From Schmidtea polychroa (lineage: Eukaryota): DNA of 64,000 nucleotides. The DNA is taken from NCBI GenBank assembly GCA_044892525.1, contig CM097886.1, forward strand, positions 1,488,001-1,552,000, written 5' to 3'. The notes below the pieces were generated by a model. It was not told where the DNA came from, did no database searches, and saw nothing but the letters and a program-made list of their open reading frames with translations. Of this stretch, positions 6,798-52,565 are shown in pieces (position 1 is the first letter of the stretch; the number at the start of each line of letters is the position of its first letter). Both the position numbers and the translations under genes were made by a program.

Positions 6798-7310
6798 CTG
6801 ATAATATTTCCCGTCCAAAAAGCACCCGGTTATATTCTTGAAGCACCCAATCACTTCTAAATCTACAAATTTCTTGCTAGCTACGTCTTCTTTTTCGATG
6901 ATAATTTCCACAGAAATCAGATATAGACCGATATCAATTGTAAGCTCCTTTTCATCCGATTGATAAGACTTTCTGGACATATTTCGCTTTTCGTTTATAA
7001 AGATCAATTCAACCGAATGAAGCTGCTTTCCAATGATCAGCTGAATTCAGGAATGTTTACTAATAATAACAATAATTGACAATAATATTTCTACTTGATG
7101 AATAAATGGAATTTCTCTATTTCCATTGTCGGTTAAATCAATCTTGATCGCTGTCGTCTCTTTTGTAGTTATTTCCAATCCAGACGAGTCAGATTTGCGC
7201 AATTTATATACATTATTAATATTATTATTATTGTTATCCGATTTGCTGTTGATAGAGATTTGATGGTCAGCAATGAAAACGTTTGATACCATTCCATTAA
7301 CCAATTTGCA
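6798..7310 (-). CDS. F5/8 type C (discoidin)-like domain, distal copy, split by a 54-nt intron (7041-7094)
   Basis: Starts CKLVNGMVSNVFIADHQIS (compare FA58C C..LGM.SG.I.D.QI.ASS) and ends DLEVIGC (compare LRLELYGC). Splicing joins PFIHQ to LIIGKQLHSVELIF in frame. Confidence 0.6.
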
Positions 7311-16300: not shown

Positions 16301-19300
16301 CGAGTTGTTGTTGTTGATTTAGTGGTTGTTGCTCCTGTTGTTGTTGTTGGTCCAGTTGTTGTTGGTCCAGTTGTTGTTGGTCCAGTTGTTGTTGGTCCAG
16401 TTGTTGTTAATTTTGTGGATGTTGGTGTCGAGGAAGAACTTGTAGGAGTTGAGCCACAATTAGTTTCCACCTTTCCTGCACACAATATGTACGTTTCATT
16501 CTTGAATATCTCTGTTAGTGAATTTTTACAAAAGAAATTTTTACAGTCTTCTCTCCATTCATAATTCAAACAATTTTTATTACAAGTGTAGACTGAACAA
16601 TAACCATAAATACAGACTTTCCGTGTCGTTGATGTTCTTTTAGTTGAAATCGTTGAAGACTTTTCTGTTGAAGAAGAAATGGATAAACTTTGAGTAGGAG
16701 TGACACCCGGTGTTGTTACTGTTGATGAAGAAGTGGTTTTTTTTGGTCTCGTAGTAGATTCTGTTAATGTTGATGTCACGGTAGACGTTGTTGTTGAGTT
16801 CGGACTTCCAGGAGAACCACTGGTTTTCAATGTCGCTGTGATAGTTGTTTTAGGGGTAGTAACTGAGAATGTTGGAGATTTTGTAATAGTTGATGAAGTA
16901 GTGCTAATATATGGTGAATATATTGTTGTTGATTTAGTCGTTGTTGAAATAGTTTGACTTGAAATTGTTGTAGATGGTGTTGATTCTGTACTCGCCTTTT
17001 TAGAAGTTACAGAAATAGTTGGTAATGAAACCGATGTCGTGATTATTGTTGAAGTTGTTATTGTAGATTTTGTAGTATCTCCTGATATTGTTGTAGTTGT
17101 GGTAGGTGGAGAAGCAGTTGATGTTTTGGTTGATTCTGAAAATGTTGTAACTGTACTTGTTGTTTCTTTTGATGTTGATATGCAATTTTCTTGTTTAATC
17201 CGAGTACAAAATATTATGGTTTCATTTTTAAATGCTACTTTCAATTTACTAGAACAAACTAGATTATTACAATTTTGAGCTCTTCCTTCCTTATTTAGAC
17301 ATTCATTTTCACAAGTATACTCTGAGCAGAACACAAATGTGCAAATATTTGGAGGTTTGCTTGTAATTTTTGTTGATATGGAAGATGTAGTAGATTGTGT
17401 TGATGTAATTGTCACATATTTTGTGGACGTTGTAGTTTCATTACATGAGCATACAGGACAGCATTTATTTCTCTCTTCCAATATGGTTTTAATGCATCCT
17501 TCAGGACATTCTAAAATGGAACATTCTTTTCGTATTTCTTTGGTTTCTATTTCGTTTCCTTTACATAAATGAATTCTGCATTCATCTGTTGCGTCTATCC
17601 ATGATTCCCCAACCTTAACAAATTTTATAATTGGAAATATCATTAATATCATAAAACTTTAAAATNNNNNNNNNNNNNNNNNNNNNNNNNNNNNNNNNNN
17701 NNNNNNNNNNNNNNNNNNNNNNNNNNNNNNNNNNNNNNNNNNNNNNNNNNNNNNNNNNNNNNNNNNNNNNNNNNNNNNNNNNNNNNNNNNNNNNNNNNNN
17801 NNNNNNNNNNNNNNNNNNNNNNNNNNNNNNNNNNNNNNNNNNNNNNNNNNNNNNNNNNNNNNNNNNNNNNNNNNNNNNNNNNNNNNNNNNNNNNNNNNNN
17901 NNNNNNNNNNNNNNNNNNNNNNNNNNNNNNNNNNNNNNNNNNNNNNNNNNNAGTTTTCATGAATTAAAAGTCTTACTTTAAATTCTTTTCTAGTAATTGG
18001 ATCTAAGCATGGGCATTCTTTGACATTGATGCAATCTGTTCCATTAAAAACAAGAGGTTCTTTGCATTCACATATAGATCCATCACACAAGCCGTCTTTC
18101 AAACAATTTTCCTGGAATTTGAGGCAAATTTGTTTTCTGCAAGTTTGTAAAACTGATTCTTCAACGACTTTTTTACATGTAGTTGGACATATAATAGATG
18201 TTGTTGTTGCCGTTTTTGTTGTCGTTGATGCACTAAAAGATTATTTCAGTAAATTGGCTTATCAATCTTCAATTTACCAGTTGTCATCCCTCATGCATTT
18301 AAATCTGCCATTAATGAGACATTGGCAATAACTACACGGAATCTCAGTACCATTACTTGTTAACTGGGGCACACTTTCACCGGCCTAAAAACGATGTTAG
18401 CTTATAATTCAAGGTAATTTTCACAACTTTAATTTTCTTTCCATTAACTTTACAGCATGCACCAAGACAGTATTGAATGCCTGTGGCGATATCAACGTGG
18501 CGAAAATCGGTAGATGGACATTCACCGCAAATAAGATTGCTGAGATTGCAATAATTTCTAAACTGATTCAATTCCAAGTTTTCCAAATCTCCAATGTCAC
18601 AAGGCAAATCACACTTGTAGCTATATGTTGAGCACGGGGTTGGGGGAATACTGGATGATGGCAGACAATTACATTCGCAGATACACTTTTCATTCCTCGG
18701 CACAATCAATCCGTCACACTATGATTATATTATTGAAGTATGTATACAATAATTTAAAATTATTTGAAAATAAACCACGCATATAATTTTAAACCAATGA
18801 GGATTAATGAAATATCTATATATTGAATAAAATTCATTTTAACGATTTTCATTGGTTTGATTTTCAAGAAATTCTTTATTTTGATATATTTATCTAAAAC
18901 AAGTCTGAAATTAATTTTACAAAAACATTAATTGCAACAATATAAAGAATTATTTTATTATAAAAAGTATAAATGAAATTCGTTTTTTAGATAAAATTAT
19001 AAGATATATTTGGTGATATCGGCAAAAAGATGAAATATTAGGAATATTATTAGTCACAAAAAAAATCTAATTAAACAATGGCTGATAAGACGCAATAAAA
19101 ACTTTAAATGTACCTTTTTAGATGAACAACTTTCTTTGCAATTTCGAAGTTTGTCTCCATTTCTTGTACAGGTTAATGCTCCGTTTTGGTTGCAAACACA
19201 AGTGTCATCCTCGCAAAAGTCAACTTTTCTTATTATTGTTTCGCCAACCTGATAACCCAATTTCATTTTCCAAATAATTTTAAAAAATTCAACATACTTG

Positions 19301-22300
19301 TAAAGTTTGATTTTCAAACTTGCATACTAGAAAAACCATGATAATAAATTAAAAACGAAAAAGAAAAGTGTAATTGAAACTTACCAGAAATACGAGTAGT
19401 AGTTGTAGTTGACGTTAAGTTACAGACCATGCAGCAATCTATCATTACTTGGTTTTCAATAGGCTAGAAACAACTAAGTTGTCGATATAACTATAACACA
19501 AGTTCTTACGCAATTCAGAGGTACAACTTTACAATCATTGAATAGTTGTTTACTCAAAATACCATCGCATACATATTTCTTGCAATTTATTGTCCATTTT
19601 TCACCATTCTAAAATTCATTAGTTATTATTATTTAAAATAATGTATATATGCCCCAATATGTTCCCCTTTCCAGTCATTAACGTATTTTCGTGAAAATTA
19701 GTCACACATGCGTATTGAAGAGTTAGCAAAAAGTTAATAACCATTCAATTAGACTTCTAACAAATCTTTCAAAGTACATCGACAGTGGAAAAAATAGTTA
19801 ACTACCAGAATGTATACGTTCACAAAAACAGAAAGAAAAAAACATCCACTATATGTTCAGCTTTGCAAAGGGATTCTCGATGCATGATATCAAGTCACAC
19901 TAAAAATTGTTCAAAACGGCTTTAAGAGAACTAAACTCGTCATTTAAAGCAAGAATGCTAGTAAGAGCGAAGAATATTTTGAATCTAATAATAAATATCT
20001 TATTGAATTCGATACTGGATGAAGCTTGTGTGACGGAATCATTGAACCTTTGGAATAGCACGACTAACTAAACCAGTGTTGAATATCCTAAAAATAATTT
20101 TTCTCTTCGGCATCCTCAGATACAACAAAAAACAACAAATTTACTGCAAATCTTATTAAGAAAATATCAGTTGATTAATGCTTTGCAAATATAACGACAA
20201 AATGACCTGAGATTGTTTCTTGTTGCTAACTACGTTTATGCGAGGCTCAATTCCAGACAAGGTCGTTATTATTTCATTAATTTACCTTCCGTTAACGCTG
20301 AACATCGACGATTACAATGATATGATCTTCCGGATGGTAGAAGCGATTCTATCAATTTCTTGCTTAACTGTGAATAATACGCTACCATACATATTAAAAA
20401 TTCTGAGTTTTTTTATTCGTATGATATTTAATATGAAATGGCTTTATGCAAACTTTAAAAACTTAGTTTGAATACGTTTGAATTAAGTATTAAAAATAAG
20501 ACCTTACCTTTCTAATTCCACCATTTTCGTCTAAGCACATGCATTCTTTTCTCGAGACACAATCTTTGCCGTTGAAAAACAGGTTTTCAGGACATTCACA
20601 TCCAGGTCTAATAAATGTAATAATCATCGTTCAAGAATTGACTAATTTTTGTACTTGCACTCTTGTCGAGAACAATTCGAGAGTTGTTGAGCTTCGCACA
20701 TGGATTCACAAGTTGGCTTTACACAGAATGTATGGATCAATGGTGGTTTGCAAAATGGAGTGGTTGTCATTACAGTTGTGGTTGTTCGGATTGAAATTGT
20801 AGAAATGGGTAAACATTCGCAGCATTGGTTATCATTTTCAACCAATTTGTGAGTTTTCTAAATTCAACATTAACAATGTAAGATACAGAAATGAGTATTT
20901 TGAAAATCTTCTTCAAGTAAACCAAACTAAAAACTATTAAACTACCATACATTACTGGAGATGTCAACCGGGAATAAGATGTATAGCGGTTTAGAATTTA
21001 GAGAGCGATTCTCGGAAAAACAAAACAGTGGAGTAAATAAAAATGTGTAAACATGGAAATCCAACAAAGATTGTGGAAGACATAAATCATTGCTTGAAAT
21101 TTACACAGTAAATGAGGATTGCTAAACGTGGAGTTATTAATATGTTTACAAAAAAAACATTTCGTAGTCACTTATTTGAAGGGTTTAAAAAGTTTTAAAA
21201 ATTCTGTTTTTTAAATCGATAAACAATTCAAATATTAGATTGAAAAATATATTCTGTCCGCTGCCTGTAGCGATAAGATTAATCATGTTTCATATAATTA
21301 TTATGCAATAGTTTGCCAAATAAAATCTTATACCAGCGTTCGCAGAAAAATTTTAAAATCTCGTAACGGGCCGCGGTCAAAAAAGTTTAAGAAACGCTGC
21401 TTTATACGTTATTTCGAAAAACAAATAAATAAAAATTAAAAAGGTTATTTCTTAATTATAAATAAAGTAAGATGCCGTAAAAATCTCGCTATTCAAATCT
21501 AATGTACATCATTAAATACAAAATTTCGTGACTAAATTAATCCTTTATATTTGATTCATGAAATAATCCCATTAAGTACCAACTTTTTGCTGTATTGTTA
21601 GACAAAATTTTTACAGAATGTATACAATACGGAGAACATAAAAAAATAATATAAAAATTATTTAACCAAATAAAACTGCAAGTATTTCGCAAGTATATTT
21701 GTTCTCAAATGGGAACTTTGGGACTTAAAACATAAAAATATACATAATTGAGTTACATAAATGTATACATAATTGTTTCAACTTCTTCAACAAAATTTTC
21801 AAAGTAGTAAAAATTCTTTGAAATCATCGTTTTGTTCTTGAATTCATCTCTATCAAGTTTCTTCAAGATGCAAGGCTGAAAATTATGAAAATGAAAACTG
21901 TAATGTTTTATTTAGCAAATCTAGTTTTTACTGATGATATAAAAGTAACCGAATATAGTATATAAACTGCAATTCTGAAATATTCTTTAACCCTATGACC
22001 GCATAATTCGACTAAAGTCACACGAATTTTTTCCCTTTCGGCGCGTAAACCGACTATTGTCCATGGCTTGTAAAGAACGTTACCTTCGGACGCGTTAGTC
22101 AACTTTTGTGGCCTTGCATTCATAAACTGTGATATCAATTAGCATTTTCAGATCCAATTTTGTTTTTCGTTTAACGCTTTCAAATGGTTAATAGTTTCAC
22201 ATTATATATTCGTATATCCACAATTTTATGATTTATATTTTATATATACATATAATAAGAATATTAGGAATATTTTACAAATTACTTCAGCCAGTTAAAA

Positions 22301-25300
22301 ATGGGGTTTCCAAAAAAAATAAAATTAACTACTTTTGATTCTGATTTTATAATTTTATTCGAATTTTGAATATCTTTTATTTAATAAAAGGTTTTTCAAA
22401 GTTAACCAAACAGCTTGATATTTATCTAAACAAACAAAGAGAAATGTGCATAATTCTTATTGCAATTAAGATCTCTTTAGAGAAAATGCAGCATGATAGT
22501 CAATTGGTAAATAGTAAAACGAGATACAAATTAAAAACTAACCTCAGAACAGGTCAATAAACAGACTTTACGATGGGTCCAGGTGCCATTGATGCATTTC
22601 TTCATTAAGCAGTTGGTAAGGATGTCGGTAGTGTCTTCTTTGCATACAGATGTCGTGACTTCCTGTGTAGGAGTGGATGTTTCAGTTGTTGTTACTATAT
22701 ATGAGAAATATTACTAACAACCGTTTAAATGTTAATCTTTACTCACCGCTCTCATAACAAACTTTCACTATCAAATTCTTCACTGTCAAAGGCTTTCCAT
22801 CAATTGTAATGATCGATACTTTCACATATTCAAATTGTTCTCCGTTTTTGTCAGTTTTGTTGAAATAAAATTTAACAGTTTCAGTGCCAGTTGTTTTCTA
22901 ATGGAAAATATCAAAATTGTTCCTCACCGCAACTTGCAACTTACATATTCCGGTTGAATTATCTCTTCACTCTTCTTTCCGAATGTAACTGTCACAACTG
23001 AGTTTGTGTTGACATTGATTTCTAGGTTGACAATGTTCACTTCGGTGTTTGATTTCGGTGTCAATTTGATTACAAAACTTATTTCATTCTTGTTTGAGTT
23101 CCATTCTTTTTCACCTTTATACGGATCATTTAACTAATATCATAAATTCAATCTCTCAATACTTGTCAGTATCTTTTCCACATCTGTCACACTTCCGTTT
23201 GTCACGTTTTGTATTTCTACTTTCATCTTTTCGTTCTTTGTCAGAGTTACAACTTCTTTTGCACAAATCTCTGGAGTTGTTATTGTGGGTTGTGGAGATT
23301 TCGTAAATGTAGCTTGAGACGTAGTTGGAGTTGGAAAGCTTGAAGTAGATACTGAAAGAAGTCATTATTTCAAACAGTTTTACATCTAAAACTTCACTCA
23401 CCGCTCTCATAGCATACTTTCACTATCAAATTTTTGACTGTCAGAGTGTATGCAATGCTTGTTTGGATCAACACTTTCATGTATTCATATGGTTCTCCAT
23501 TTTTATAGGTTTTGTCGAAATTAAATTCCAACTTTTCTGAGCCCCTTGATTTCTGAAATAAACATTAAAATTGATAAAAAATGAATACATTTTCATTTTA
23601 TTATTACATATTGTGATTCAATTATCTCTTCACTCTTCTTTCCGAATGTAACTGTCACAACTGAGTTTGTGTTGACACTGATTTCTAGGCTGACAATGTT
23701 CACTTCGGTGTTTGATTTCGGTGTCAATTTGATTACAAAACTTATTTCATTCTTGTTTGAGTTCCATTCTTTTTCACCTTTATACGGATCATTTAACTAA
23801 TATCATAAATTCAATCTCTCAATACTTGTCAGTATCTTTTCCACATCTGTCACACTTCCGTTTGTAACGTTTTTTATTTCTACTTTCATCTTTTCGTTCT
23901 TTGTCAAAGTTACAACTTCTTTTGTACAAACCTCTGGAGTTGTTATTTTTGCAGTTGTTGAAGTCGTCACTTGAGTTGGTGTTGTTACTGAAATTCAGAG
24001 ATTATTACTTACACATTTCTATCTCAATCTTTACTCACCGCTCTCATAACAAACTTTCACTATCAAATTCTTCACTATCAAAGGCTTTCCATCAATTGTA
24101 ATGATCGATACTTTCACATATTCAAATTGTTCTCCATTTTTGTCAGTTTTGTTGAAGTAAAATTTAATAGTTTCAGTGCCAGTTGTTTTCTAAAAAGTTC
24201 ATACGATAAATATCGTATATTTTTGTTATAAATAATTAAGTCAAAACAATCACATTACTTTTTATGTTTATCTTATTTATCCTATTTAAAGGTCTCTCAT
24301 TCTACTCGTTTATAAGACCTCTTACTTCACCAAATCAACTATGAATGATGTCGACGAAAATATTTTAAGATGTTGGATATCAGTCTGACCTTAAACAATG
24401 AATATTCAAAGTTATTTTTTTTAATCAGTTTATAAGACAATAAGTATTCCATATTCATTAGTATTCATTAGCCAATTACTAGAAATTAACTTCTACTTAT
24501 AATGTATACCTATTTTTACCGCCGTTACTTATACTTGGTATTGACAAGTAATTACACGCAACCTGTACATCATATTTCCATAAAATCCAAAACACAAGCT
24601 TATTAAAATAGCTAATTTATACTAGAGATCAAATAAATTTGCAGATCAGTGAAATTTAAAGATGTTTCAAATATGTAAGTACAGAATATTTTAATGAAAT
24701 TATTCTGTTCTTCTATTTAACAAGACTAATTTATCATTTAGTTTTGGAGTAAAAAGGTCTGATTAACTGCCACTTTTTATTGCGGTAATATTTTATGATT
24801 TGGATTAATTATGATGAAAGAATTAAAAATTTTAAAAAACAACAATTAGCCTCCACTAGATTTTTCAACATCCATTTGTATACTACAGAATCATATAAAC
24901 CAGACGTTTAAAAAAATTATTGAAGAAGTTAATTGAATTTTTGAGATAATGCAGATATACCAAGAACTCAAACCAACAATTATGAAGGCATTTTTTATCA
25001 ATAGAGGCAGTAAAGAAATATGAAAAATGAGAACCAGTGAAATATTAGAAGAACCACACAGAAGTTCCATTTAAGAAACTTCCAAATTTAGCCTCACATT
25101 TGAAGATTGCTTTATCTGATAGAAAAAGTAAGGACTTTGCAGTCGAAATTTCTAGAATAATTGTCAAATTGGCCATTGGAGTTATATGTCCTACTATCAT
25201 AAACTGTATTCTTCTTTATCTGACATTTACTTCCATTTCTAATATTGCTTTACCTTTAGTTTCTAAAAATACTATCACTTACACATCTCAGTGTATTCAT

Positions 25301-28300
25301 TTCCTGACATTTACTGTAGTTCCCCTAACGAGTAAACATTCCATTTTCTGATCTAATAGTCACATGTTGCCTGTCTTGCATTTAATCATATCTGATATTG
25401 CCATTTCCTTATTCATCTAATGTCAGTATTTGTATTTTTTCTTTTTCTCATTTTTTAAAAATCTGTTTGGTTTCCACATTATACAATTATCATCTTTAAG
25501 ATCTTTATTTTGTGAATCAGTATAGTTGTCCGATACACTACTCTGAGAATTTTCTCTTCTATTGAAGCGTTAATTTGGTAGTATTCTCTGAATCCATCTT
25601 CTGTTCTTTCGTAACTTGATTTGTCTATAAATGTCACAAATCTCTTGTTCGCTGGTATATCATATCTGTCGTTCCTTGATAACCAGTATCTCCTTCATAT
25701 TGTCCATCTTGCTTTCTGAAATTTTCATTGGTTCAACTATATCTTATTCTCTCCAAATTTATTCGACAAAAAGCCTATATATGACCACCCAAGTTATATC
25801 CTTGCACCTTATCTCTTGACTATTTCTTTATAAGTGTTATAAAGCATCTAAATAATAGCACGTGAATACTTTTTCTACGCGTGTGGACATTCATTTTTAC
25901 ATTTATCTGTCTTCATGTTCAAAACATGTAACTGTTTACAGGTTCTAATAAATGCCCTAACTTGTGACATGTCCAACATTCGATTAAATATGTATTTCTT
26001 CTCGATATTCTATCAGCTTATTACATCTCGTTATAACCAAATTTTTATAATGTTTTAGAAAGTTATAAATATAGATAATTATAGAGTAGAAATAGTAGAA
26101 ATAGAAAATTTATTATTAACATGTTGAATCATGTTTAAAAATTAAATATTATTTTGGTATTAATACAATTTTAGATATTGCTTAAACCTTCAAGTTTACC
26201 AACTGTGAGCAATGTAGAATATGTTGTAGTAATATTTAACATGGGGTTCACATATTTTGAATTATTCATAACGTAAGTATTTCCATGCGATTTTCGTAGA
26301 TTTGATTAGGTAGAAGCAATTTTTGAAGAACGTAAACAGTATTTAAAGTGTGGAAATGCTAAATTTCAAAAAATAAGATAAAACGGTCAAATTATAAGTC
26401 GATAAGAGATAAGAAAAATGTATAAATGGGTCAAAGCAAACATCAAGTATTATAAGGAAACGCTACGAAAAGAATTAATAACGAAAAAATCATTAGAAGC
26501 TGATTAGCAATCATCTTTGGCTTATAAAGAAACGAGCGAGAAATCAAAAACTATTTTCAATCATAGACGGTTTAGTAGAAAATATTGGAACGCGAATCAA
26601 AAAAAGAAGTTTTATCAGAATGTCAATTAATACATTTTGTTACCAAGAAAACTTTGAGATAATAGTTGCAAATGAGAGTTCAAATTAAGCAAAAAATCAA
26701 GAAGTTGCAACAAGAAATATTAATCACAAAGATATGGTGCACAGAATGCAATACTTCCAGAATGATGACTACAATATAATGTTTGCATAGCAGCTTTTTT
26801 ATTTTAGCACTTTTATTTACACTGAGACAACAAAAATGATATGAAAACTTACATATTCCGGTTGAATTATCTCTTCACTCTTCTTTCCGAATGTAACTGT
26901 CACAACTGAGTTTGTGTTGACATTGATTTCTAGGTTGACAATGTTCACTGCGGTGTTTGATTTCGGTGTCAATTTGATTACAAAACTTATTTCATTCTTG
27001 TTTGAGTTCCATTCTTTTTCACCTTTATACGGATCATTTAACTAATATCATAAATTCAATCTCTCAATACTTGTCAGTATCTTTTCCACATCTGTCACAC
27101 TTCCGTTTGTCACGTTTTGTATTTCTACTTTCATCTTTTCGCTCTTTGTCAGAGTTACAACTTCTTTTGCACAAACCTCTGGAGTTGTTATTGTGGGTTG
27201 TGGAGATTTCGTAAATGTAGCTTGAGACGTAGTTGGAGTTGGAAAGCTTGAAGTAGATACTGAAAGAAGTCATTATTTCAAACAGTTTTACATCTAAAAC
27301 TTCACTCACCGCTCTCATAGCATACTTTCACTATCAAATTTTTGACTGTCAGAGTGTATGCAATGCTTGTTTGGATCAACACTTTCATGTATTCATATGG
27401 TTCTCCATTTTTATAGGTTTTGTCGAAATTAAATTCCAACTTTTCTGAGCCCCTTGATTTCTGAAATAAACATTAAAATTGATAAAAAATGAATACATTT
27501 TCATTTTATTATTACATATTGTGATTCAATTATCTCTTCACTCTTCTTTCCGAATGTAACTGTCACAACTGAGTTTGTGTTGACACTGATTTCTAGGCTG
27601 ACAATGTTCACTTCGGTGTTTGATTTCGGTGTCAATTTGATTACAAAACTTATTTCATTCCTGTTTGAGTTCCATTCTTTTTCACCTTTATACGGATCAT
27701 TTAACTAATATCATAAATTCAATCTCTCAATACTTGTCAGTATCTTTTCCACATCTGTCACACTTCCGTTTGTCACGTTTTGAATTTCTACTTTCATCTT
27801 TTCGTTCTTTGTCAAAGTTACAACTTCTTTTGTACAAACCTCTGGAGTTGTTATTTTTGCAGTTGTTGAAGTCGTCACTTGAGTTGGTGTTGTTACTGTA
27901 ATTCAGAGATTATTACTTACACATTTCTATCTCAATCTTTACTCACCGCTCTCATAGCATACTTTCACTATCAAATTCTTCACTATCAAAGGCTTTCCAT
28001 CAACTGTAATGATCGATACTTTCACATATTCAAATTGTTCTCCGTTTTTATCAGTTTTGTTGAAATAAAATTTAACAGTTTCAGTGCCAGTTTTCTTCTA
28101 ATGGAAAATATCAAAATTGTTCCTCACCGCAACTTGCAACTTACATATTCCGGTTGAATTATCTCTTCACTCTTCTTTCCGAATGTAACTGTCACAACTG
28201 AGTTTGTGTTGACATTGATTTCTAGGTTGACAATGTGCACTTCGGTGTTTGATTTCGGTGTCAATTTGATTACAAAACTTATTTCATTCTTGTTTGAGTT

Positions 28301-31300
28301 CCATTCTTTTTCACCTTTATACGAATCATTTAACTAATATCATAAATTCAATCTCTCAATACTTGTCATTATATTTTCCACATCTGTCACACTTCCGTTT
28401 GTCACGTTTTGTATTTCTACTTTCATCTTTTCGTTCTTTGTCAAAGTTACAACTTCTTTTGCACAAACCTCTGGAGTTGTTATTTTTGCAGTTGTTGAAG
28501 TCGTCACTTGAGTTGGTGTTGTTACTGTAATTCAGAGATTATTACTTACACATTTCTATCTCAATCTTTACTCACCGCTCTCATAGCATACTTTCACTAT
28601 CAAATTCTTCACTGTCAAAGGCTTTCCATCAATTGTAATGATCGATACTTTCACATATTCAAATTGTTCTCCATTTTTGTCAGTTTTGTCGAAATAAAAT
28701 TTAACAGTTTCAGTGCCAGTTGTTTTCTAATAAATTGTATAATAACTATCTACTCCGTAATTAGATTTTATAAGATAGTTTACAAAAGTGTATTTATCTG
28801 AATTAGAGCTATCCAGAAAACAACAAGCAGATCACCTATGGATTTTGATTTTTGCGCATGAAAAAATTAAACTTTTTAAATCAAATGGTATTAGATTTTA
28901 TCTATACTCTGAATGTTGGTTTTTTTAATGTATTTTCTTGTCACTGAAGGTTTTTTTTAAAAATTAAATTATGTTGCTGACTGTAAATCTTTTGTTTGTT
29001 ACGCAGCCACAGTACCATCAAAGATAATTTTGCCTCTATGTAGAACGTATATGACGTTGGGACAATTTTATCTATGTATTCATGAACAACAAGAATATGC
29101 ATGTACGCATATGCGCATATACACGGTCATATACATATGTTTAAAGAAAGAACCTCTCAAACCGATAGAAACTTAATGAATTGATACGACCTTTTATGGA
29201 AAATACATTACAATGCTCTAACTGAATCAGGCGCTGGTGTTGCTGGATCATTCGAATTGTGTCGCTGCTATATACCGAATTTCTACATAAGCTTTGCGAT
29301 ATATTTCTATGTTATCTTTAGTAATTTCTTTCTATTTAATATATCCTATAACTGCTTATCAATAAACGACAAAGTCTAACAAAAAAAGCCTGTATAAAAC
29401 TGAGTGAAATCAACATCATTTGATTAAAAAAAACAATAAATTCGATGTTTTGTTTCCATGTAGATTTGGTCAGTGCATAAAAATGAAATAGGAAATGATA
29501 CTACGCTGCATTTCACATTAAAACATGTAATATGTATATTGAAGAATTAAGAATCACCATTATTAGAGTACATAAAAACTGGTGAACCAAATCAGTTTTT
29601 TGTAAAAACAGCAATGCACAAATGAGGATTGGGTTTAGTGAATATAAAAAGGTTTTACGTAACGGTATGATGGTGAAGAAAGGTGGAATTGAAATGGCAA
29701 AAAACAATAGATTAAGTCAATATTTAATGGCAAGTATGAGTCAATGACATTATCTCCTTAAATCCTTATATGGGGTGTAGAACAAACGAAATGCTGTTTT
29801 CAATAGCAAAATGTGAGTAGTTTTCATTGTATTTAGAATAAAAGACTGATCAACTTTACAACATTATGAACTATTCAGGAGGACTTTACAATAATTGAAT
29901 AACTGTTCAGCCTCATATCTCTGTATGGGACTTCTAGAATGAATAACATTGTCAAATTAGTTTAAAACTGTAATTATGAATGTTTCGGTAAATGTTGCTG
30001 TATAGTTACAGATGGAGTCAAAGCTTTAACAGAAACTAGAATAGGCATTTGAGGACAAATTCAATAAATTAATAGTAACTGTCCTTAATTTCACTTATTC
30101 ATTCGTCAAGAATCATTTTTTGACAACTATCTATATCAAGTCAATGCCAGGTAAAATGCTACAAAATATACTAATATTATAAGAAGCGATAATAAATCTC
30201 TGATTCTTAACACTATCCTCGGGCGCCTTTTTAAATAACTTTTTATAATAGTTATAATGATTATATTAAAAGGATATAAAAAGAAAACTGAAAATTCTAG
30301 AAAAAAGTTGCTTTTTATTAATTTTTAGAGTACATAAGGGAAACTTGATTACCGCAGTCAACAGTGAAATGATAAGACAACTTTCATGATGCCTAAATAT
30401 CCTAAAAATGATATACAACGCGATAATAGCGTACCCCGCGAATTGTAAAGAAAAAGTGAAACGCGATATTCACGTTTTCGATATTCGAGGCTAAATGGTT
30501 AATAAGATTTATTAGTTCTTTAGCGCAATTGACATGGCATTTTTGTTTTTGGTATTCTCTGTTTCAGGGTTTGAAAATGTCTGGAACACCCTTTATGATA
30601 TTCGGAAAGAAATGCCTATACTGCCTAAAATCATTTTCAAGTATGACACAAGAACCCTTGGAAGTTTATTGCAAGATCTTCCGATTAAAACAAATATTAT
30701 TAATCATTTGAATGAAGTGGTCTAAAAACTGCGGTACAAATAGTAGAATTTTGCAGTATGAATGACTTTATAAGTAAACGGAAACTTTTTAAACGATTAT
30801 TCGGTAACAATATTTTTACAATTTTTCGCGATTTCAAAGAACATTTTGAAAAAATGAATTATTATGATGTAACATCGTTTTCACCTCATGTAAAATGTCT
30901 TGAAACAAACATAGAACATTATGAGAAGGCAGTTGGCGGTTTCCAAGAAATTGAATATGCCTCATGTCATACTAGGCCTTCGCCATCAGCATTGAAAATT
31001 TAATAATCAGACCGTTTTCATAATGATAATGGAAAAAGGAAAAAAATTCCATAACGTTTACTGTAATAGTGAACGATCTAAAAATGAGAAATTTCCGCTA
31101 AAGGATTTGCTGAATGCTAACACTTCTTTAACCCTCTCCGTGTAAAAAATAATGCTGATATTTATAGTGACCCGTTCTATTCCCACAAAAACGGTTACAA
31201 AATGTGCCTTCAGCTTCATCCCGATGGATTCACAGCTGGAAAAGGGACACATCTTTCTGTTTTCTTTTTCATAATGCGCGGTGAAAACGATGTACTTTTG

Positions 31301-34300
31301 CAATGGCCTATGAAACTGGAAGTGACATCTTGCTTTAATGTTGAATATATTCGACAAATATACAGAGAGGGTTAATGAAATTCATTTTATCAAAGAACAG
31401 ATATGTTCAGTAACAAATAAATCTCTTTCAAATTCATTATGATGCTTAACTTCAATAATCAAATTGATGTGCAAATGATGAAAAATTATCAGCGATCTCG
31501 TAAAAATAAAATAAATAAATATTGTATCCTGTCTATACCTTCAAAAAAACTTGACTTTTTCTTTATGACAAAATTTTAAAATTATTTACTCAAACTAACT
31601 GACGAAGGCCACTACAGCTAAGTAAAAAAATTTCAATAATTGTAATTATCAGAAATTAAAACAAATAATATAAATGATATGAAAACTTACATATTCCGGT
31701 TGAATTATCTCTTCACTCTTCTTTCCGAATGTAACTGTCACAACTGAGTTTGTGTTGACATTGATTTCTAGGCTGACAATGTTCACTGCGGTGTTTGATT
31801 TCGGTGTCAATTTGATTACAAAACTTATTTCATTCCTGTTTGAGTTCCATTCTTTTTCACCTTTATACGGATCATTTAGCTAATATCATAAATTCAATCT
31901 CTCAATACTTGTCAGTATCTTTTCCACATCTGTCACATTTCCGTTTGTCACGTTTTGTATTTCTACTTTCATCTTTTCGCTCTTTGTCAGAGTTACAACT
32001 TCTTTTGCACAAACCTCTGGAGTTGTTATTGTGGGTTGTGGAGATTTCGTAAATGTAGCTTGAGACGTAGTTGGAGTTGGAAAGCTTGAAGTAGATACTG
32101 AAAGAAGTCATTATTTCAAACAGTTTTACATCTAAAACTTCACTCACCGCTCTCATAGCATACTTTCACTATCAAATTTTTGACTGTCAGAGTGTATGCA
32201 ATGCTTGTTTGGATCAACACTTTCATGTATTCATATGGTTCTCCATTTTTATAGGTTTTGTCGAAATTAAATTCAAATTTTTCTGAGCCCCTTGATTTCT
32301 GAAATAAACATTAAAATTGATAAAAAATGATTACATTTTCATTTTATTATTACATATTGTGATTCAATTATCTCTTCACTCTTCTTTCCGAATGTAACTG
32401 TCACAACTGAGTTTGTGTTGACACTGATTTCTAGGCTGACAATGTTCACTTCGGTGTTTGATTTCGGTGTCAATTTGATTACAAAACTTATTTCATTCCT
32501 GTTTGAGTTCCATTCTTTTTCACCTTTATACGGATCATTTAGCTAATATCATAAATTCAATCTCTCAATACTTGTCAGTATCTTTTCCACATCTGTCACA
32601 TTTCCGTTTGTCACGTTTTGTATTTCTACTTTCATCTTTTCGTTCTTTGTCAAAGTTACAACTTCTTTTGTACAAACCTCTGGAGTTGTTATTTTTGCAG
32701 TTGTTGAAGTCGTCACTTGAGTTGGTGTTGTCACTGTAATTCAGAGATTATTACTTACACATTTCTATCTCAATCTTTACTCACCGCTCTCATAACAAAC
32801 TTTCACTATCAAATTCTTCACTGTCAAAGGCTTTCCATCAATTGTAATGATCGATACTTTCACATATTCAAATTGTTCTCCGTTTTTGTCAGTTTTGTTG
32901 AAATAAAATTTAACAGTTTCAGTGCCAGTTGTTTTCTAATGGAAAATATCAAAATTGTTCCTCACCGCAACTTGCAACTTACATATTCCGGTTGAATTAT
33001 CTCTTCACTCTTCTTTCCGAATGTAACTGTCACAACTGAGTTTGTGTTGACATTGATTTCTAGGTTGACAATGTTCACTTCGCTGTTTGATTTCGGTGTC
33101 AATTTGATTACAAAACTTATTTCATTCTTGTTTGAGTTCCATTCTTTTTCACCTTTATACGAATCATTTAACTAATATCATAAATTCAATCTCTCAATAC
33201 TTGTCAATATCTTTTCCACATCTGTCACACTTCCGTTTGTCACGTTTTGTATTTCTACTTTCATCTTTTCGTTCTTTGTCAAAGTTACAACTTCTTTTGC
33301 ACAAACCTCTGGAGTTGTTATTAAGGATGAAGTTGTCGGCTTAGTTACTGGGGGTGTTATGATAGTAGTACCTATTGCATTGTCATACTTGGTATAGTAA
33401 TTAAAATGATTTATTGAATACCTATCTTATAACAGACCCAAAGAATAAAGTTTCGCATTTCTAATTCTTCGTTATTTTGGCTTTCTATTGTAAATTTTAT
33501 GAATGGAAAACTTTCCCCATCTTTGCTTAGTGTTTGGAATAATTTTGCAACGTTTCCTTGTCCAATTACAGTCTAGAATTAATTAAATTAATTTTAACTT
33601 TTAAATTAACTTTTAATTTTATTTAGTTTGAAAATCGCAATACTTGATAAAGTTTATGATAAATTAACAAAATAAATATGGAAATTGCGAGAAATTTCAT
33701 CATGAAACCTTTATAGTTATATAATACAATTCGAAATTTAACTTTGTCCTAAATAAATTTTTATGAAGTTAACATTTCGATTAATACACTAATCCAAAAT
33801 AATTTTCCTGAAAATTTTCATTATTAAGTTTCCCCGGTGTTTATATATTCATAATATTCCTATTCTTGATTTTATTCAATTATTTGTATCACTTACATAT
33901 GGATTCAAATCGACTTTGTTCTCTTCGTTTCCGAAACTAACGAGAAGCTTGAATGGTTTAGTAATATTAATCTGGAAACCAACGATGATGAGTTCAGTTC
34001 CAGTTAGAGGTTGAAGGCTTAGAGTAAAACTTGCATTTGTATTTATAGCTATCCAACTTTTACCATNNNNNNNNNNNNNNNNNNNNNNNNNNNNNNNNNN
34101 NNNNNNNNNNNNNNNNNNNNNNNNNNNNNNNNNNNNNNNNNNNNNNNNNNNNNNNNNNNNNNNNNNNNNNNNNNNNNNNNNNNNNNNNNNNNNNNNNNNN
34201 NNNNNNNNNNNNNNNNNNNNNNNNNNNNNNNNNNNNNNNNNNNNNNNNNNNNNNNNNNNNNNNNNNNNNNATTATTATTACTTCACCGATTTTTGTATAA

Positions 34301-37300
34301 TAAACTGGGGGTCCCGATAATGAACAAGTATTATTATTCGCAGCAAAAGGCTTAAATTATCATTTAATTGTTTTAAAATAATAATAAAAAGTTAATTATA
34401 AAAATTAATAATGAAAACTAAGAAAACGATTAATAATAATAATAAATGGCTGCCTCTGCTGTAAGTCTGGAAATAAATAATCCATACCTTCCTGGCTCAT
34501 TAAATTTATAAAATCAACCGCAATGTAACTCTTACTGGTAAAGATATTTGCAACATCAGTCTCAGTTCCACCTCGAACGTTCACAATTTTCACTGACGAA
34601 CTTTCTGATGTCAATTCTGCTTGCTTCTTTTCACATTTTTCAAAAACTGTTGTTGTGTGAGATACTGTCCAAGTTGTTGATGCTGAATAAATGAAGCCGA
34701 TAATTGACATTTGACCAATTCAATAACTCACAGATCAACTGGCATTCACAACATTTATCCGAGTAAAGCTTCAACACGTAATTCGGTTGACAAGTTCTAT
34801 CACAGTGTTGGTTGATCTCGATAGTAAGGCTATCTTTGCAGATAGCAGACTGGCAGAATTCAAGCTTAATCACTTCACCAATTTCCATTATTCGTCCTTT
34901 GTAAATACAATGCGGTTGAGTTGTCGTTGTCGGTATAGTTTTCGATTGCGTTGATGTACAGTTTGCTTCATCACTGCCATCGCTGCATTCCGGGACTCCG
35001 TTACAGATTCGAGCGCAAAGGCCATTTTCACATGTCTTCAATTTGCTACCGATACAGTCTAGCAAATGAATAGAAATCATGTTGTGGAATTAGATTAAGA
35101 ATAATGTTTACAAGATGACGTTGAGGTTATGCATTTCGGATCGGATAGACACTTGAAATTGTTCTCGTTGCAAACACTGAAATTAGAGCATTAGAAAAAG
35201 CGAGCTGGAAATCATAATTCATTACCAAATGAGACAGTTTTCTCTGATTGTATCTCCTGGCAGGTATTTTTTATCGCTGTTTGGTAACTTACAGAAGCAT
35301 TCGTTTTCTTTAACGCATTTATCTTTTAAATGGAATTTATTATTAAAGAAATAGAAATGATTTAGTTGTTTTACTCGATCCCTCTGCCTCGATATATTCA
35401 GTAGGACATGAGCAACCTTCCACGCAATTCTTTGCACAATTTTCGAGAACCGTGTTATTCAAATTGGACTTGAAGCACTTTTTCGGGCAATCATTGATGC
35501 ATGTCTTAAATGTCTTTTCAGGTGGACACATGACGGCTGGATGAAACAGTCAGCATTTTCGAAAGCAGATATTCACTTACGACAAAGTTCATTTGATCTC
35601 CAAGAGTAATCGATTCCGTATTTCTTACAAGCGGAATAAAATGCAGACAACGCGGTGCACAAACATTCACAGTCTCCCCCTCGATCACAAGAACAAGTGT
35701 CTGACAAACATTTTTGATAATACAATTCTGTATCGACAACTTTCTGACAGTCGGAAAACTTTTTGTCTTTCATCGTTCGACACATTTTATCTGCCCATGC
35801 TTGACGTTCGTGATTAGATTTACACATGTCTGGAACATCCTTAGCAGCCGGACAGTTGACTCTTGACTTCCAACTGTCAACGAAAGCTAAAATATTATTC
35901 TCATAGTTGCCGGCTTTGGACCTGGAAATTTTGAATATAAATTATTTTTTTAATTTGTATATTTCATTTGGGAAATATATCTATTAATAGAAGTAACAAA
36001 ATGATAACATCTACATTTTGTCAATCGTAGATGCATAAGGAATAATACGAGGAATAATGAGCTTTTCTGAATTATACAGCTAACAAGAAATAAGTGGTTA
36101 AAAAAGAGAATAATGTCAAGTCCCATAGAAAACAAAAAAATTTATTAATGGTAATTAAATAATTTTGCTATTTCATAGTTAAAAAATGGAAATCATCATA
36201 CGCAGTATAATATCTACTATATAAAATTACAAATGAAGCTGATAAAGATGGCAAAACATAAAGATAAATTTTACATAATATTTTACTTATCATTTGTCAG
36301 TAAAACATTACGATAACTTTTTCAAAATATTTTAGAATTTTTATTGTAGAATTAAATAAAAGTTCAGTAAAATAAAATATTGTAATGTTATTTTTTGAAA
36401 TTTTAATTGTAAAAAATTACTATATCAATATTAGGAGCTTTCAGTCCTAGTAATTAAATGAAATATCAAATAGGATAATAACACTTGAAAGCATAGACAA
36501 TAATCGAATTGTTTAACAGATGAAGGAAAATGAAAGTGTAAATAAAATTATACCGAAAGTGTAAAGATCAATAAAATTAATAATTTACATTTTTCTGTCA
36601 GTGAAACCATATATCACGATATATAATATTTCGTAGTGAAAGATCATTTTTCTACTATGGATATTATTGCCAACACTATAAAAATTCCTCCTAAAGTGAA
36701 CTATCCATAAAAAATAAGAAAATATTTCCTAAGCTTCAAAAAATACAAAGCAGGAGGAAAAGTAAAATGGAATATATTTCTAAATATCGCTTAGTACCTC
36801 TCGAAAAAGTGCAAATATAATCAAGTATATTAGCGTTATCATTAAAAGTTGTGAAAATTTAAATAAAATATGACGCTCAATATATTTTTCAATGTTCATT
36901 TATTTATCGTATATTTTGCGAAAACAAGTGGAAATCAAGGCAAAATTCAAATTAAAGTATAGCTACATATTAGATTAAATAAAATAACTGAGAAACTTAT
37001 TAAACTTTGCAGATCTTCTCTATAAACCCATTCCCCAATTATTTAATCCCAGGAACGCCACTGGTAATTTCTGCAAATTGTCTGTTGTTTGTTAGATTTT
37101 TTTCTACTTGTTGCATGGGCCGTATATGTTGAAAATTTATTCTCAAAAATAAATGAATTTCCATTATTAATAATTGATGGAAACTGTAAAATCCATTTAA
37201 ATGTACATCTATCAATATGTGAAAAGATTTATTGAATGTTTCTAATAAAAATAATATTTGAATATGCATAATTATGGAAATTAGGTTTATATGTTTAAAA

Positions 37301-40300
37301 CAATGCTTCAATTTCAAAATATCCCACAGGTTAGCTCTTGAATAATTGTGCATAAGTCTTTTATTCTTATTACTATTGTATAGAATATATAGCAACACAA
37401 TAGGTTGTTGAAAGGATTTCAATAGGTTTATAAATGAATAGGTTTACAAATACAAGGAAAAATACTTGAAATCGTTATTGAGATTTTGATCGAAATTGCC
37501 GCACAATCCACAAACTTGATTCTGATATTCTGGTGGTAAAACAATCTCTATTGACAGACCTTTATCCCAATAAAGAATGATGTCACTGTCAGTGAAGATA
37601 ATCAACTGGCTGACTAGATCTCTGAAAGATATTCGTCCTTTAACTCTATCTTTCGGGTAGTTCTCATTTTCTATCAGTTTTGGGCTTACTCCTCTGATCA
37701 GTTGCACCACCTGGTTCCGATAATAGAAAAAGATTGATTTCGTGCAAGATGTTCCTTTGTTGCCACATTCAATATTTTCAGTTACCAATTTGAAAAATCC
37801 AATTCCTTTCGCACAATCATTATCAACCATTACATAGGAGCATTTAGAAACAAAATCGAAATATTTCCCATCAAATGTTTTATAATGAGCATCACCCCAA
37901 GATTTGCAACTACCGACGCATTTTTGTTCTTGCTCACATCCCCATTTGCCTTCATTACATGTGCTGAATAATTAAACGTATTTTCTTTCCAATGAATAGC
38001 TAGAACAATTTACCATTTAGATAAACAATTAGTAGGACCGGTGTAAATGACAGATTGATTTAGATAACTTTTATCGGACCACAAACAAGGACATTTATGT
38101 TTCGGGACACAAGTTTTATTGCTAAGCAAATAACCATCTGGACAGAAACAGCCAGATTTACAGCCTTTTTCCAAGCAAAATCCGTCTTGATTTTCACATG
38201 TTTGATCACAATGGCCACATTCTTTCCATTCCTTTCCGGGTGGACAAAATGTCACATCTAAATATTAGAAACAAGTCCACAGAGTCAAAAAGTAAAAAAT
38301 TGATTAAAGCATTGAAACCATTCGAAAAATATACATGGATATTTGTAGACTATTGAAAGAAACTTTTACTAGGGAAAACTGTATTTACATTAAAAGAAAG
38401 ATAATTCTCTATCACTAATAAGTACAACTATAGATATTGAAATTTAGCTTACCAAAAGAAACATATACCATAAAAGAATTGGTAAAAACGGAATGAAATG
38501 AGTTAATATTATCAAATCAGTACTTTTTCTAATTTTTATATTCATCTGCTCGATGCAATCATAATGCTCCATGGTGATCCTTAACTTGTGCCAAACTCTT
38601 TTCTAGCTTCTCTGGCATTATCGCAGCATTGAAATTTAATAATATTAATCAAAATCAGTGGCGGATTTAGATTTTGGTGCGTGAGGGGCAAGGAAAATTT
38701 TCAGGGGGCGCCACAAATTATGAAGATGGTACTACTTATTTTCGCGAGTATTGAGTGAATACTATTATTATTAAAAAGCATTATATTCAGTAAATTTATT
38801 CTAGTAAATTTATTGATGTAACAAACATACAAGTTTATTTATTATTTAAATTGCTTCCTGCGTGATTTCATTGAAACAAAACGATTTATAGTCGATTCAA
38901 AGTCAATGTTCTCAGCCAGTTCGCGTTCTATTGAAATTAATACTAATCCAGACAGACGTTCGTTTGTCATTGTTGATCGCAAATAATTTTTGATGATTTT
39001 CAGTCTACTGAAACTTCTTTCGGCAGTAACAGATGTAACAGGAAGAGTCAAGTATATTTTATAGAGAATTGCCAAATTGGGAAGCCTGGCGCCATCTGTT
39101 TTTCAATCAAGAAAGGCAGCACCTCTTTAAGTTGTAGTTCACAAGATAGTAATAGGTGTATTGATGCATACACATATTTGATGTATCATATTCTAGGATT
39201 GCTTCTTCAATATTAATATCATTTTTGTAAATGTCGCAAAAATTTTGAAAAGATTCTGATATTTGTGATGGATATTTGTGATGGATCAAGACAGGAGAAT
39301 AAAGCAACAGTGTTATGAAAATCATTAAAACCTTCATCTAGTAGTGTTACAAGTGTATCCAAGACAGTGAAATACGTTTCACATTTGAAGCGTGTAGTTC
39401 GATCATCAACCCTTTCATCTCTGTTAAGTTCACCTGCCATGCGTTTCCTTTTTGCAACTCGCTTTTCTTTAAATTCTGTTTCAACATCTAGTAAGGAACA
39501 ATTTTTGATAATAAATGATTTTACAGCAACATTTAGACTTTCAAAAGCTTTATCACTTCTCATATCAGCAAACTTCTTTCTGGCAACATAAATCAATTGT
39601 TTTGCAAACACAATTTTAAACAATTATATGATAATTTAAGCCTTTTGCAGCGAATAAAATCAATAACCCTTGACAAGGACTACCTTATAGTTGAAAATTT
39701 TTTCATTTGAATTAAATTATTTAATTCAAATGAAAAAATTTTCAACTATAAGGTAGTCCTTGTCAAGGGTTATTGATTTTATTCGCTGCAAAAGGCTTAA
39801 ATTATCATTTAATATCAATCAAAATATTATATTAAAATGCTGAAGTTTCAGAGTTATCATAAGATATGATAATTTAGAATATTAATAATAATTAATAATA
39901 ATTAAGAAAAATTAAGAATTACAACGTAATTGTACATTAGCTATCTGTAAAAAATATCTTACTTGAACAATCATTCTTTGTACAGGACCACACGCCGTTG
40001 GTACAGTTGCAGTCGTTGCATTTCTCTTTTCTCGAGCTTCCAGATGGATAATATGTATTCTCATGCAAGCATTGGCATTGTGAAATGTTGACGCATTGAT
40101 TTATCCCAGTGTCATATACCATATTCTGAATTATTTACTCATTAATTTCCAGATTAGCAATATATATATAATCTTATACTTCTTTGCATTGACATCCGTC
40201 GATGCATTCTGTAGCGCAATTTGTTTGTGTTAAAGAGAAACAACTAACAGAACAGAGGTTTTTGCATTCCATGTATTCCATTCCATTAGGACATTTTGGG

Positions 40301-51113: not shown

Positions 51114-51485
51114 GCCATATTTTTCCGTTTTATTCAAACACTCAAAATTCCATCTCTGGCCTAACATATGACTTGTCCGCAGTTGAAGCCCAAAATGAAA
51201 TACGAACTTAATCAAAGACTAAAAAGCCAGAAGTAATTAGTTAAGCGGTATGTACTATGATATGCATAATTTTACTTTTATAATTAACTGTATTATTAAT
51301 GCCTACATAAGTTAAGGGATGTGAGAATCATGATTTTCTATAAAGTAAATTTGATTTCATTAGTGTTTATCTCCGCAAAAAACATCTAGTTGTTTACAAG
51401 TCATTTCAATGAAGTTTGTAACTGTAAAAAAGTACGAGACAAGATATTTTAACATAAAAAAAAACTAGGTTTGATCTTGTTCAAC

Positions 51486-52565
51486 CCGTTTCATATAATA
51501 CAAATTATATTATATTTTTATTTGTTAATTATATCATTGAATTTTTAAATATTTTCATTTTATTACTTAATATTTTCATTTATTATATAATGAAAATATA
51601 ATAAATAATATAAATTTAATAAATATCCAATAAAAATACAAATATAGTATAATTAACAAATAAAAAATAAATAATAGTAATAAAATAAAAATTAATAATA
51701 TATTAATATAAATATTAATTTTAAAATAAAAATATAATAATTAGTAACAAAGAGACAAGATATTTCAAACCGTTTCATATAATACAAATTATATTATATT
51801 TTTATTTGTTAATTATATCATTGAATTTTTAAATATTTGCATTTTATTACTTAATATTTTCATTTATTATATAATGAAAATATAATAAATAATATAAATT
51901 TAATAAATATGCAATAAAAATACAAATATAGTATAATTAACAAATAAAAAATAAATAATAGTAATAAAATAAAAATTAATAATATATTAATATAAATATT
52001 AATTTTAAAATAAAAATATAATAATTAGTAACAAAGAGACAAGATATTTCAAACCGTTTCATATAATACAAATTATATTATATTTTTATTTGTTAATTAT
52101 ATCATTGAATTTTTAAATATTTTCATTTTATTACTTAATATTTTCATTTATTATATAATGAAAATATAATAAATAATATAAATTTAATAAATATGCAATA
52201 AAAATACAAATATAGTATAATTAACAAATAAAAAGTAAATAATAGTAATAAAATAAAAATTAATAATATATTAATATAAATATTAATTTTAAAATAAAAA
52301 TATAATAATTAGTAACAAAGAGACAAGATATTTCAAACCGTTTCATATAATACAAATTATATTATATTTTTATTTTATTACTTAATATTTTCATTTATTA
52401 TATAATGAAAATATAATAAATAATATAAATTTAATAAATATGCAATAAAAATACAAATATAGTATAATTAACAAATAAAAAATAAATAATAGTAATAAAA
52501 TAAAAATTAATAATATATTAATATAAATATTAATTTCCAAATAAAATATAATAAATAGTAACAAA
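51486..52565. repeat. AT-rich tandem array, 284-bp unit, about 3.8 copies
   Basis: ccgtttcatataatac recurs at 51486, 51770, 52054 and 52338. The fourth copy is internally deleted. Units contain internal inverted repeats. Confidence 0.95.

Follow-up and report, generated by a model that had tools for sequence, protein, structure and literature searches.

A 64,000-nucleotide stretch of the Schmidtea polychroa genome (assembly GCA_044892525.1, contig CM097886.1, positions 1,488,001 to 1,552,000 of the forward strand), referred to here as the window, carries on its minus strand a mucin gene in which nine tandem modules, each split over three exons, lie between the N-terminal head and the Pro/Thr/Ser-rich (PTS) regions. 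We consider it likely that this array is the central part of an expressed, planarian-like gel-forming mucin and that its nine modules are beads with a galactose-binding fold that serve in glycan binding or cross-linking. In the direction of transcription the gene encodes EGF repeats, three VWD-C8-TIL units, an LDLa repeat with a Cys-rich stretch, the nine modules (M1 – M9), TIL-like and Cys-rich exons, and repeated PTS blocks. The modules occupy positions 34682 to 22747 and were delimited from the listing of open reading frames (ORFs) and by direct reading of the sequence. The array and the exon that precedes it are as follows, in window coordinates and in the order of transcription.

34732-35089, minus strand: LDLa repeat and Cys-rich (VWC-like) exon, spliced to M1 exon a; the Pfam Ldl_recept_a match is weak (19.3 bits)
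34536-34682, minus strand: M1 exon a, with a short Thr-rich lead-in, the first Cys and the first strands, from sequence reading and a contig boundary at 34682
34067-34270, no strand: assembly gap (a run of N) in the M1 a/b intron, hiding the exon b acceptor
33897-34066, minus strand: M1 exon b (GKSW...NPY), found by the exon-b profile in the species' own genome
33422-33572, minus strand: M1 exon c (...ILWVCYKI, second Cys), from translation
32785-33371, minus strand: M2, exons 33371-33201, 33152-32983 and 32935-32785, both internal junctions present in contigs of four runs
32148-32733, minus strand: M3 (type B exon c), exons 32733-32572, 32523-32354 and 32298-32148, from template alignment
28576-32097, minus strand: M4, exons 32097-31909, 31860-31691 and 28726-28576, with a 2964-nt intron before the last exon
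27947-28524, minus strand: M5, exons 28524-28363, 28314-28145 and 28097-27947, from template alignment
27310-27895, minus strand: M6 (type B), exons 27895-27734, 27685-27516 and 27460-27310, from template alignment
24039-27259, minus strand: M7, exons 27259-27071, 27022-26853 and 24189-24039, with a 2663-nt intron before the last exon
23402-23987, minus strand: M8 (type B), exons 23987-23826, 23777-23608 and 23552-23402, from template alignment
22747-23351, minus strand: M9, exons 23351-23163, 23114-22945 and 22897-22747, from template alignment

In M2 – M9, exon a is 162, 171 or 189 nt long, exon b 170 nt and exon c 151 nt, and the length of each module is divisible by three. Their introns all have GT-AG ends and measure 47-55 nt, except for the long b/c introns of M4 and M7. 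Template alignment with frame tracking joined the spliced M2 – M9 into one open frame of 1318 aa without a stop. Repeat finding recovered a 300-nt DNA unit in 8 copies with 92-100% identity and spacings of 663, 629 and ~3.2-3.5 kb, a repetition far beyond chance. Every module opens with a Thr/Ser/Pro linker, 20-29 aa long with 60-66% Ser/Thr/Pro and probably O-glycosylated, and continues as a domain of ~138 aa. This domain holds the only two Cys of the module, separated by 137 residues, as well as 2-3 N-X-S/T sequons, and a Trp is kept in all nine (SEKEW in M2 – M9, GKSW in M1). The initial annotation had described nine three-exon modules here, with one Cys at each end, a conserved Trp and N-X-S/T sequons. 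The exons, the splicing and the open frame bear out the modules, and the residues are present in each of them. Plus-strand ORFs at 30529-31375 lie inside the 2964-nt intron of M4; one of them encodes a TRAF/meprin MATH domain (E 6.5e-11) and reads as a nested or decayed TRAF-like gene fragment.

The splice evidence came from contigs of four small sequencing runs of the same organism, which are labelled, by guess, as probable RNA. Three intervals are precisely missing from these RNA-like contigs, 47 nt at 32936-32982, 48 nt at 33153-33200 and 49 nt at 34683-34731, each of them bounded by GT..AG, and the resulting joints at 32935/32983, 33152/33201 and 34682/34732 are the predicted junctions. 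Further contigs run from the last bases of an exon c directly into an M3/M5-type exon a, and one contig of run X2 spans 33475-33572 and ends at the predicted M1 exon c acceptor. From these joints it follows that the LDLa exon is joined to M1 and that modules are joined to one another, consistent with the earlier proposal that the modules are spliced into the mucin mRNA.

M1 is a diverged module that precedes M2 – M9 and aligns with them without gaps at 27-43% identity. Its exon a has 43% identity (alignment A4) to exon a of P0001, an outside gene model with the same modules that is described below, and its exon b is 27% identical to that of M2, again gapless. The assembly gap follows the M1 exon a donor (34535) and extends up to the exon b coding sequence. 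A start at 34066 would give exon b a length of 170 nt, as in M2 – M9 and in the homologous metagenome contig L035, and the phases across the gap fit, with 1 nt carried over plus 2 nt. Because exon b length and phases fit, the flanks of the gap are compatible with one in-frame module, in which case the gap would conceal no more than intron sequence and the acceptor, and continuity of M1 across the gap is plausible but unproven. The 81 nt at 34320-34400, on the high-coordinate side of the gap, match a dispersed repeat that occurs genome-wide in at least 743 candidate copies, which share ~55-70 nt at 89-100% identity. In one RNA-like run the depth over 34320-34400 reached 5860, compared to ~10-30 on the exons, and the flanks differ on both sides. 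The adjoining dispersed repeat accounts for both the assembly break and the depth spike near the gap.

We assign the module with good confidence to the galactose-binding domain-like (discoidin/CBM32/DOC-type) beta-sandwiches on the basis of a predicted structure. An AlphaFold model made from near-identical copies had a predicted local distance difference test score (pLDDT) of 67 and fold matches at background (Z 7-9), and was replaced. The alignment for the second model (A4) had the diverged M1 and the exon pieces of L035 added, and the resulting AlphaFold2 model reached a pLDDT of 82.9 and a predicted template modeling score (pTM) of 0.81, with five concordant models at 78.7-82.9. Its comparison by VIA-align with 48,161 PDB representatives, for which the tool states a best-hit background of Z 7-8, returned 83 chains with Z of at least 8. 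The top 50 rows have Z 12.8-9.0, with 112-130 residues aligned at 2.4-4.0 Å and residues 4-146 covered, and we take these top 50 entries to be galactose-binding domain-like sandwiches. They include the HERC2 DOC domain (Z 12.8), IFT25 (12.1), CBM32 (11.6), the galactose-binding domain of a Micromonospora sialidase (10.8), the muskelin discoidin domain (10.7), discoidin I (9.2) and a Bacteroides F5/8C domain (9.1), and also a SUN domain and galactose oxidase domain 1. Foldseek returned the HERC2 DOC domain (TM-score 0.63, E 3.5e-4), and the structure matches in the AlphaFold database (AFDB) and the Atlas belong to the same fold class as those in the PDB. At the superfamily level, the whole domain aligns structurally to several unrelated galactose-binding-like members above background. 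The language-model neighbours of the module are F5/8C and galactose-binding clusters at 0.81-0.88, values that count as leads only. The pair of Cys 137 residues apart recurs in the sequences of P0001 and of the paralogue on C2, and, by analogy with discoidin domains, probably forms one disulfide that ties the N- and C-terminal strands. Matches of whole P0001 to RASSF8-10_RA, DUF3048_C and DUF3157 were rejected as sums of weak repeats, a single module having E 0.005-0.05, below the cut-offs. The initial annotation had proposed a diverged discoidin or galactose-binding-fold array. AlphaFold, Foldseek and VIA-align uphold the fold; membership in F5/8C in particular is not established, for there is no HMM (hidden Markov model) match and DOC, IFT25 and CBM32 are as near as the animal discoidin domains.

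A search of the species' own genome with the exon-b profile found only ten exons, nine in this array and one in a paralogue at C2:22.02 Mb. Besides an LDLa repeat and the Cys-rich stretch seen in this gene, that paralogue carries just one module, whose three exons and phases correspond to those of the array, and the downstream exons of the paralogue are homologous to window 22710-20645. Its module is significantly related to those of the array by sequence comparison (hmmsearch E 1.4e-8, the best of 2000 shuffles reaching 10.9 bits; hhalign 91%). A third VWD gene lies at C1:23.3 Mb; downstream of its VWD, after C8 and a small Thr-rich exon, it encodes a Cys-bracketed domain with SISASS, GWEP and IEGCG motifs. 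In this domain exons a and b are fused, and its first half lies at 0.92-0.94 to F5_F8_type_C clusters of the Atlas. The module and the C1 domain share a local match of 31 columns with 42% identity (VEKILTSEKEW vs VEQILTESGWEP), which is not significant. A VWD match in a 5277-aa frame on C3 was set aside, since by eye the frame looks like a lipid-transfer (apolipophorin/vitellogenin-type) protein and not a mucin. The MAFFT alignment A6, which included paralogue exon pieces, was misaligned and was not used. The paralogous domains are located as follows.

L044 (C2:22019001-22029000) 4386-2144, minus strand: C2 paralogue with LDLa repeat, Cys-rich stretch and single module, exons a 3910-3770, b 3077-2901 and c 2809-2639, with a long a/b intron
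L043 (C1:23317001-23327000) 5492-5686 and 5727-5930, plus strand: F5/8C-like domain of the C1 paralogue, from Atlas clusters

Outside the genome, an exhaustive exon-b profile search of 1.84 billion representatives gave only two real matches, P0001 and P0002, and a word-based homologue search with three modules recovered only P0001 itself. P0001 is a 1390-aa gene model (UniParc UPI000601561C) with six complete modules and one partial module, spliced in the same way as read here. The 87-93% identity between its modules and the ones in the window means that it comes from a close relative or another strain. P0002 is a 72-aa fragment from L035, a 797-nt metagenome contig (k141_2607769, ENA assembly ERZ27257134), of which positions 1-381 hold exons a and b from a homologue that has diverged further but keeps the intron position. 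This homologue lacks the Trp, ENEVKVN replacing EKEWNSN, and presumably derives from another triclad in the environmental sample. The lineage restriction that had been suggested is therefore matched by two genes in the genome itself and, outside it, P0001 and one metagenome fragment.

M2 – M9 are 93-100% identical, introns included, so that the amplification of these eight copies is recent. Across them, exons a and b are 95-100% identical with a synonymous divergence (pS) of ~0.03, and the introns are 96-100% identical within module types. Exon c occurs in two types, type A in M2, M4, M5, M7 and M9 and type B in M3, M6 and M8, which share 75% identity with pS 0.41-0.46 and a nonsynonymous divergence (pN) of 0.20-0.22. 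The two types of exon c are older and, because pN is 0.20 against a pS of 0.43, under purifying selection. In the simplest history, the ancestor would have had a single discoidin-like module placed behind the mucin head after the LDLa repeat, as in the C2 paralogue. On this scheme the discoidin-like domain would have diverged strongly in two paralogues, and a block of two or three modules holding both types would then have been amplified by unequal crossing-over. Gene conversion would have homogenised exons a and b while the two types of exon c were kept apart.

The host gene was assembled from the regions on either side of the array and from domains beyond the window, as follows.

35346-46010, minus strand: N-terminal mucin head with three VWD-C8-TIL units, from Pfam VWD, C8 and TIL matches on exon ORFs and from the genome VWD search
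6654-22710, minus strand: downstream part of the gene with Cys-rich/TIL-like exons and PTS blocks at 17658-15238 and 12941-7050, a second Cys-bracketed domain following each PTS block

The PTS region contains tandem repeats at 7418-12570 and 15604-16408 and T/S/P-rich open frames of 1964 and 807 aa, with more PTS blocks beyond the window. The C-terminal domains TIL, TIL, VWC and cystine knot/DAN lie ~16-18 kb past the window start on the same strand, at L036 4136-2007 (C2:1470007-1472136, minus strand), with Pfam scores of 33.8 bits for TIL, 30.6 for VWC, 22.5 for DAN (cut-off 22) and 23.4 for Cys_knot (cut-off 24). We infer from strand, order and the repeating PTS blocks, rather than from reads, that these domains belong to this gene. 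Three VWD-C8-TIL units, PTS tandem repeats, and a VWC with a cystine knot, the features that Lang et al. use to define gel-forming mucins, are all present. The gene thus reads as a complete and expressed gel-forming mucin; the initial annotation had already called it gel-forming. Just upstream of the C-terminal domains there is a weak F5_F8_type_C match at L036 4504-4187 (...SDDGKTY...LKLIVSGC, E 0.12). Just past the 3’ end of the mucin, a RING/zf-TRAF ORF occupies L036 1179-541 on the minus strand. At window 51480-56030 there are AT-rich tandem repeats and several assembly gaps.

The second Cys-bracketed domain that follows each PTS block is ~137 aa long, has a beta-strand-like pattern and ends in ...DLEVIGC. 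It is encoded by two exons separated by a 50-54-nt intron and occurs in four copies, all in this gene (window 7313-7095 with 7040-6798; 15501-14986; L037 ~5330-4815; L037 1190-694), three of them identical and one 27-50% identical. No Pfam or Atlas lead was found for this domain. It may be another diverged discoidin-like bead; kinship with the module is not claimed, hhalign being colinear with an E of 0.09. At least four copies exist of the larger unit that these domains form with a Cys-rich exon and a PTS tract (window 14743-16408 and 6555-8238; L037 7452-4670 and 2974-879). The two window copies agree at 93%, and at 100% over 131 translated residues that read on into the next intron, which would reflect either recent duplication or assembly redundancy.

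Several points weigh against reading the array as nine discoidin-like beads of an expressed mucin. The runs behind the splice evidence are only guessed to be RNA, and no RNA-like contig covers M1 exon b, crosses the gap or covers the M1c-M2a junction. The copy number of an array with such identity may also be mis-assembled, and the count of nine would then be a product of the assembly, near-identical 0.63-kb units having been collapsed or over-expanded. The identity of the units with their introns, the gap within the array region and the 93% duplication of the downstream PTS block agree with such an error. However, in P0001, with its six complete modules and one partial module, the types alternate in the same way and the long intron is found at the corresponding place, the copies in the window carry diagnostic substitutions, and both long introns (in M4 and M7) are unique sequence that anchors the blocks on either side, which argues against a purely artefactual array. 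We regard an assembly origin of the count as quite improbable. The remaining points concern the family. Pfam returned nothing significant for a single module (P0001:90-260), and hmmscan of the same segment at E up to 10 did not return PF00754 (curated cut-off 28.2 bits), the sole related lead being DUF7402 at 10.8 bits, a family that co-occurs with F5/8C in Atlas clusters. A six-frame PF00754 search of the genome found no match within this mucin gene, and the module profile had no match among PDB sequences. The PF00754 matches elsewhere in the genome are single-exon F-type-lectin-like genes outside the VWD genes, and they were set aside; hhalign of the module gave E 0.24 against these domains and E 0.3 against the F5/8C-like domain of the C1 paralogue, both from shallow alignments of little power. 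Sequence comparison thus found no link of the module to any named family, and the alignment behind the model is itself shallow, with 12 rows of which several are exon fragments. The module could instead represent an independent, planarian-specific galactose-binding-like family that merely took the same place in the mucin. Such an origin agrees with the missing HMM and profile-profile signal to PF00754-type sequences, with the structural ranking, in which animal discoidin domains are not the top neighbours, and with the restriction of the family to two genes in the genome and two very close outside sequences. The array nevertheless sits where F5/8C domains sit in protostome mucin-like proteins (PMC4948705), its terminal Cys bracket is the same as in those domains, and the local match to the C1 domain, although not significant, points the same way. 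We consider an independent family unlikely, though well worth keeping in view, and retain the reading as a diverged discoidin-like array.

The function of the beads is less certain than their fold. Extracellular galactose-binding-fold domains usually bind ligands via loops at one end of the sandwich. The polymerising VWD head, the cystine knot and nine tethered beads would together make a highly multivalent, low-affinity binder, and the beads may cross-link the mucin network or hold the mucin to prey, microbes or substrate. Glycan binding, which is usual among extracellular domains of this fold, is the most likely role of the beads, with slightly less than an even chance; they might recognise glycans of the mucin itself, or microbes, prey or the substrate. 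Self-association or cross-linking without glycans is a weaker candidate, and a plain spacer role is the least likely. Against a lectin function stands the protein-binding rather than lectin nature of the nearest structures, DOC and IFT25. The modules might then be inert, rigid, N-glycosylated spacers that stiffen the part of the protein linking the polymerising head to the PTS brush, or CysD-like protein-protein cross-linkers, and in either case bind no sugar. The best structural matches (HERC2 DOC, APC10, Cullin-7/9 and IFT25) all bind proteins, no conserved ligand motif is recognisable in the modules, and the residues common to M1, M2 and the C2 paralogue are mostly alternating positions of the hydrophobic core. 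On the other side, almost every known extracellular member of the fold (CBM32, discoidins, F-type lectins, neuropilin b) has a glycan, lipid or peptide ligand that it binds via loops, and the two module types under purifying selection suggest more than a spacer. We judge an absence of sugar binding possible but unlikely. A bolder version takes the modules as a planarian-specific family of the fold, which amplified very recently and now forms a nine-valent lectin rod of a pharyngeal mucin, with types A and B recognising different glycans. This seems rather improbable to us; if true, the mucus would actively capture prey or microbial surfaces, beyond lubrication. Under the reading that we prefer, a mucin carrying nine galactose-binding-fold beads, the suggested function is glycan binding or the cross-linking of pharyngeal or body mucus.

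The array provides a concrete case of an invertebrate mucin gaining globular beads, one discoidin-like domain having become nine copies in a short evolutionary time. It supplies an annotation for 1,450 previously unrecognised residues in one of the few planarian gel-forming mucin genes, and both the module and the second Cys-bracketed domain represent families missed by current HMM libraries. The general picture of mucin evolution is unchanged.

Among known systems, Lang et al. 2016 (PMC4948705) place F5_F8_type_C domains behind the third VWD-C8-TIL unit of protostome mucin-like proteins and describe them as characteristic of Lophotrochozoa. The module resembles the F5/8C domains of these hemolectin and mucin-like proteins in its place after the third VWD-C8-TIL unit, its length of ~140-150 aa, its terminal Cys pair, its predicted galactose-binding-like beta-sandwich and the small PTS stretches that adjoin the domains (PMC4948705). 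Unlike those domains, the array has no PF00754 match and no ASS-type motif, and an LDLa repeat precedes it. No two further VWD units were seen after the array in this gene, which therefore does not have the 3+2 layout. Hemolectin/hemocytin has two F5/8C domains, compared to nine tandem copies with mucin-like linkers here. The best structural matches, CBM32, IFT25 and DOC/APC10 (Z 11-12.8, 116-127 residues at 2.4-2.6 Å), differ in being bacterial enzyme modules or intracellular protein-binding domains with 9-14% identity to the module and without the terminal Cys pair; the likeness seen in the model is one of fold and does not imply kinship. The CysD domains of MUC2, MUC5AC and MUC5B are likewise small globular domains among O-glycosylated tracts and are thought to act as non-covalent cross-linkers, and by analogy the beads may play the same architectural role. 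A CysD domain has ~110 aa, ten Cys and a different fold; the module, with two Cys, does not belong to that family.

Adhesive proteins offer a further comparison. Temporary adhesives repeatedly combine VWD, EGF and discoidin domains, and sea-urchin Nectin has six tandem discoidin domains (PMC10057474), although it differs from the present gene in having neither a VWD head nor PTS. The flatworm adhesive Mlig-ap2 has a VWD, C8, TIL and LDL head followed by long tandem protein repeats (PMC8621496). These repeats, of 221 and 255 aa, showed no similarity to the module in the exhaustive exon-b search, and the gene described here ends in VWC and a cystine knot, as a mucin does. In Schmidtea mediterranea, Smed-muc-like-1, -2 and -3 encode three N-terminal VWD with C8/TIL and are reported to be expressed in peripharyngeal gland cells (Forsthoefel et al. 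2020, PMC7117911); the passages used here, from its methods and results, say nothing of a module array. Three such genes match the number of paralogues here (C2:1.5 Mb, C2:22.0 Mb and C1:23.3 Mb), a match of count and not of orthology. The earlier statement that no named mucin has nine such units was overstated in so far as the layout is known, from F5/8C domains in mucin-like proteins (PMC4948705) and from the six discoidin domains of Nectin (PMC10057474). The array is a diverged and recently amplified form of a layout known from invertebrate mucins and not a new kind of protein; what it adds to that layout is a module beyond the reach of HMM libraries, a family confined to two genes and very close relatives, and a recent nine-copy array behind an LDLa repeat.

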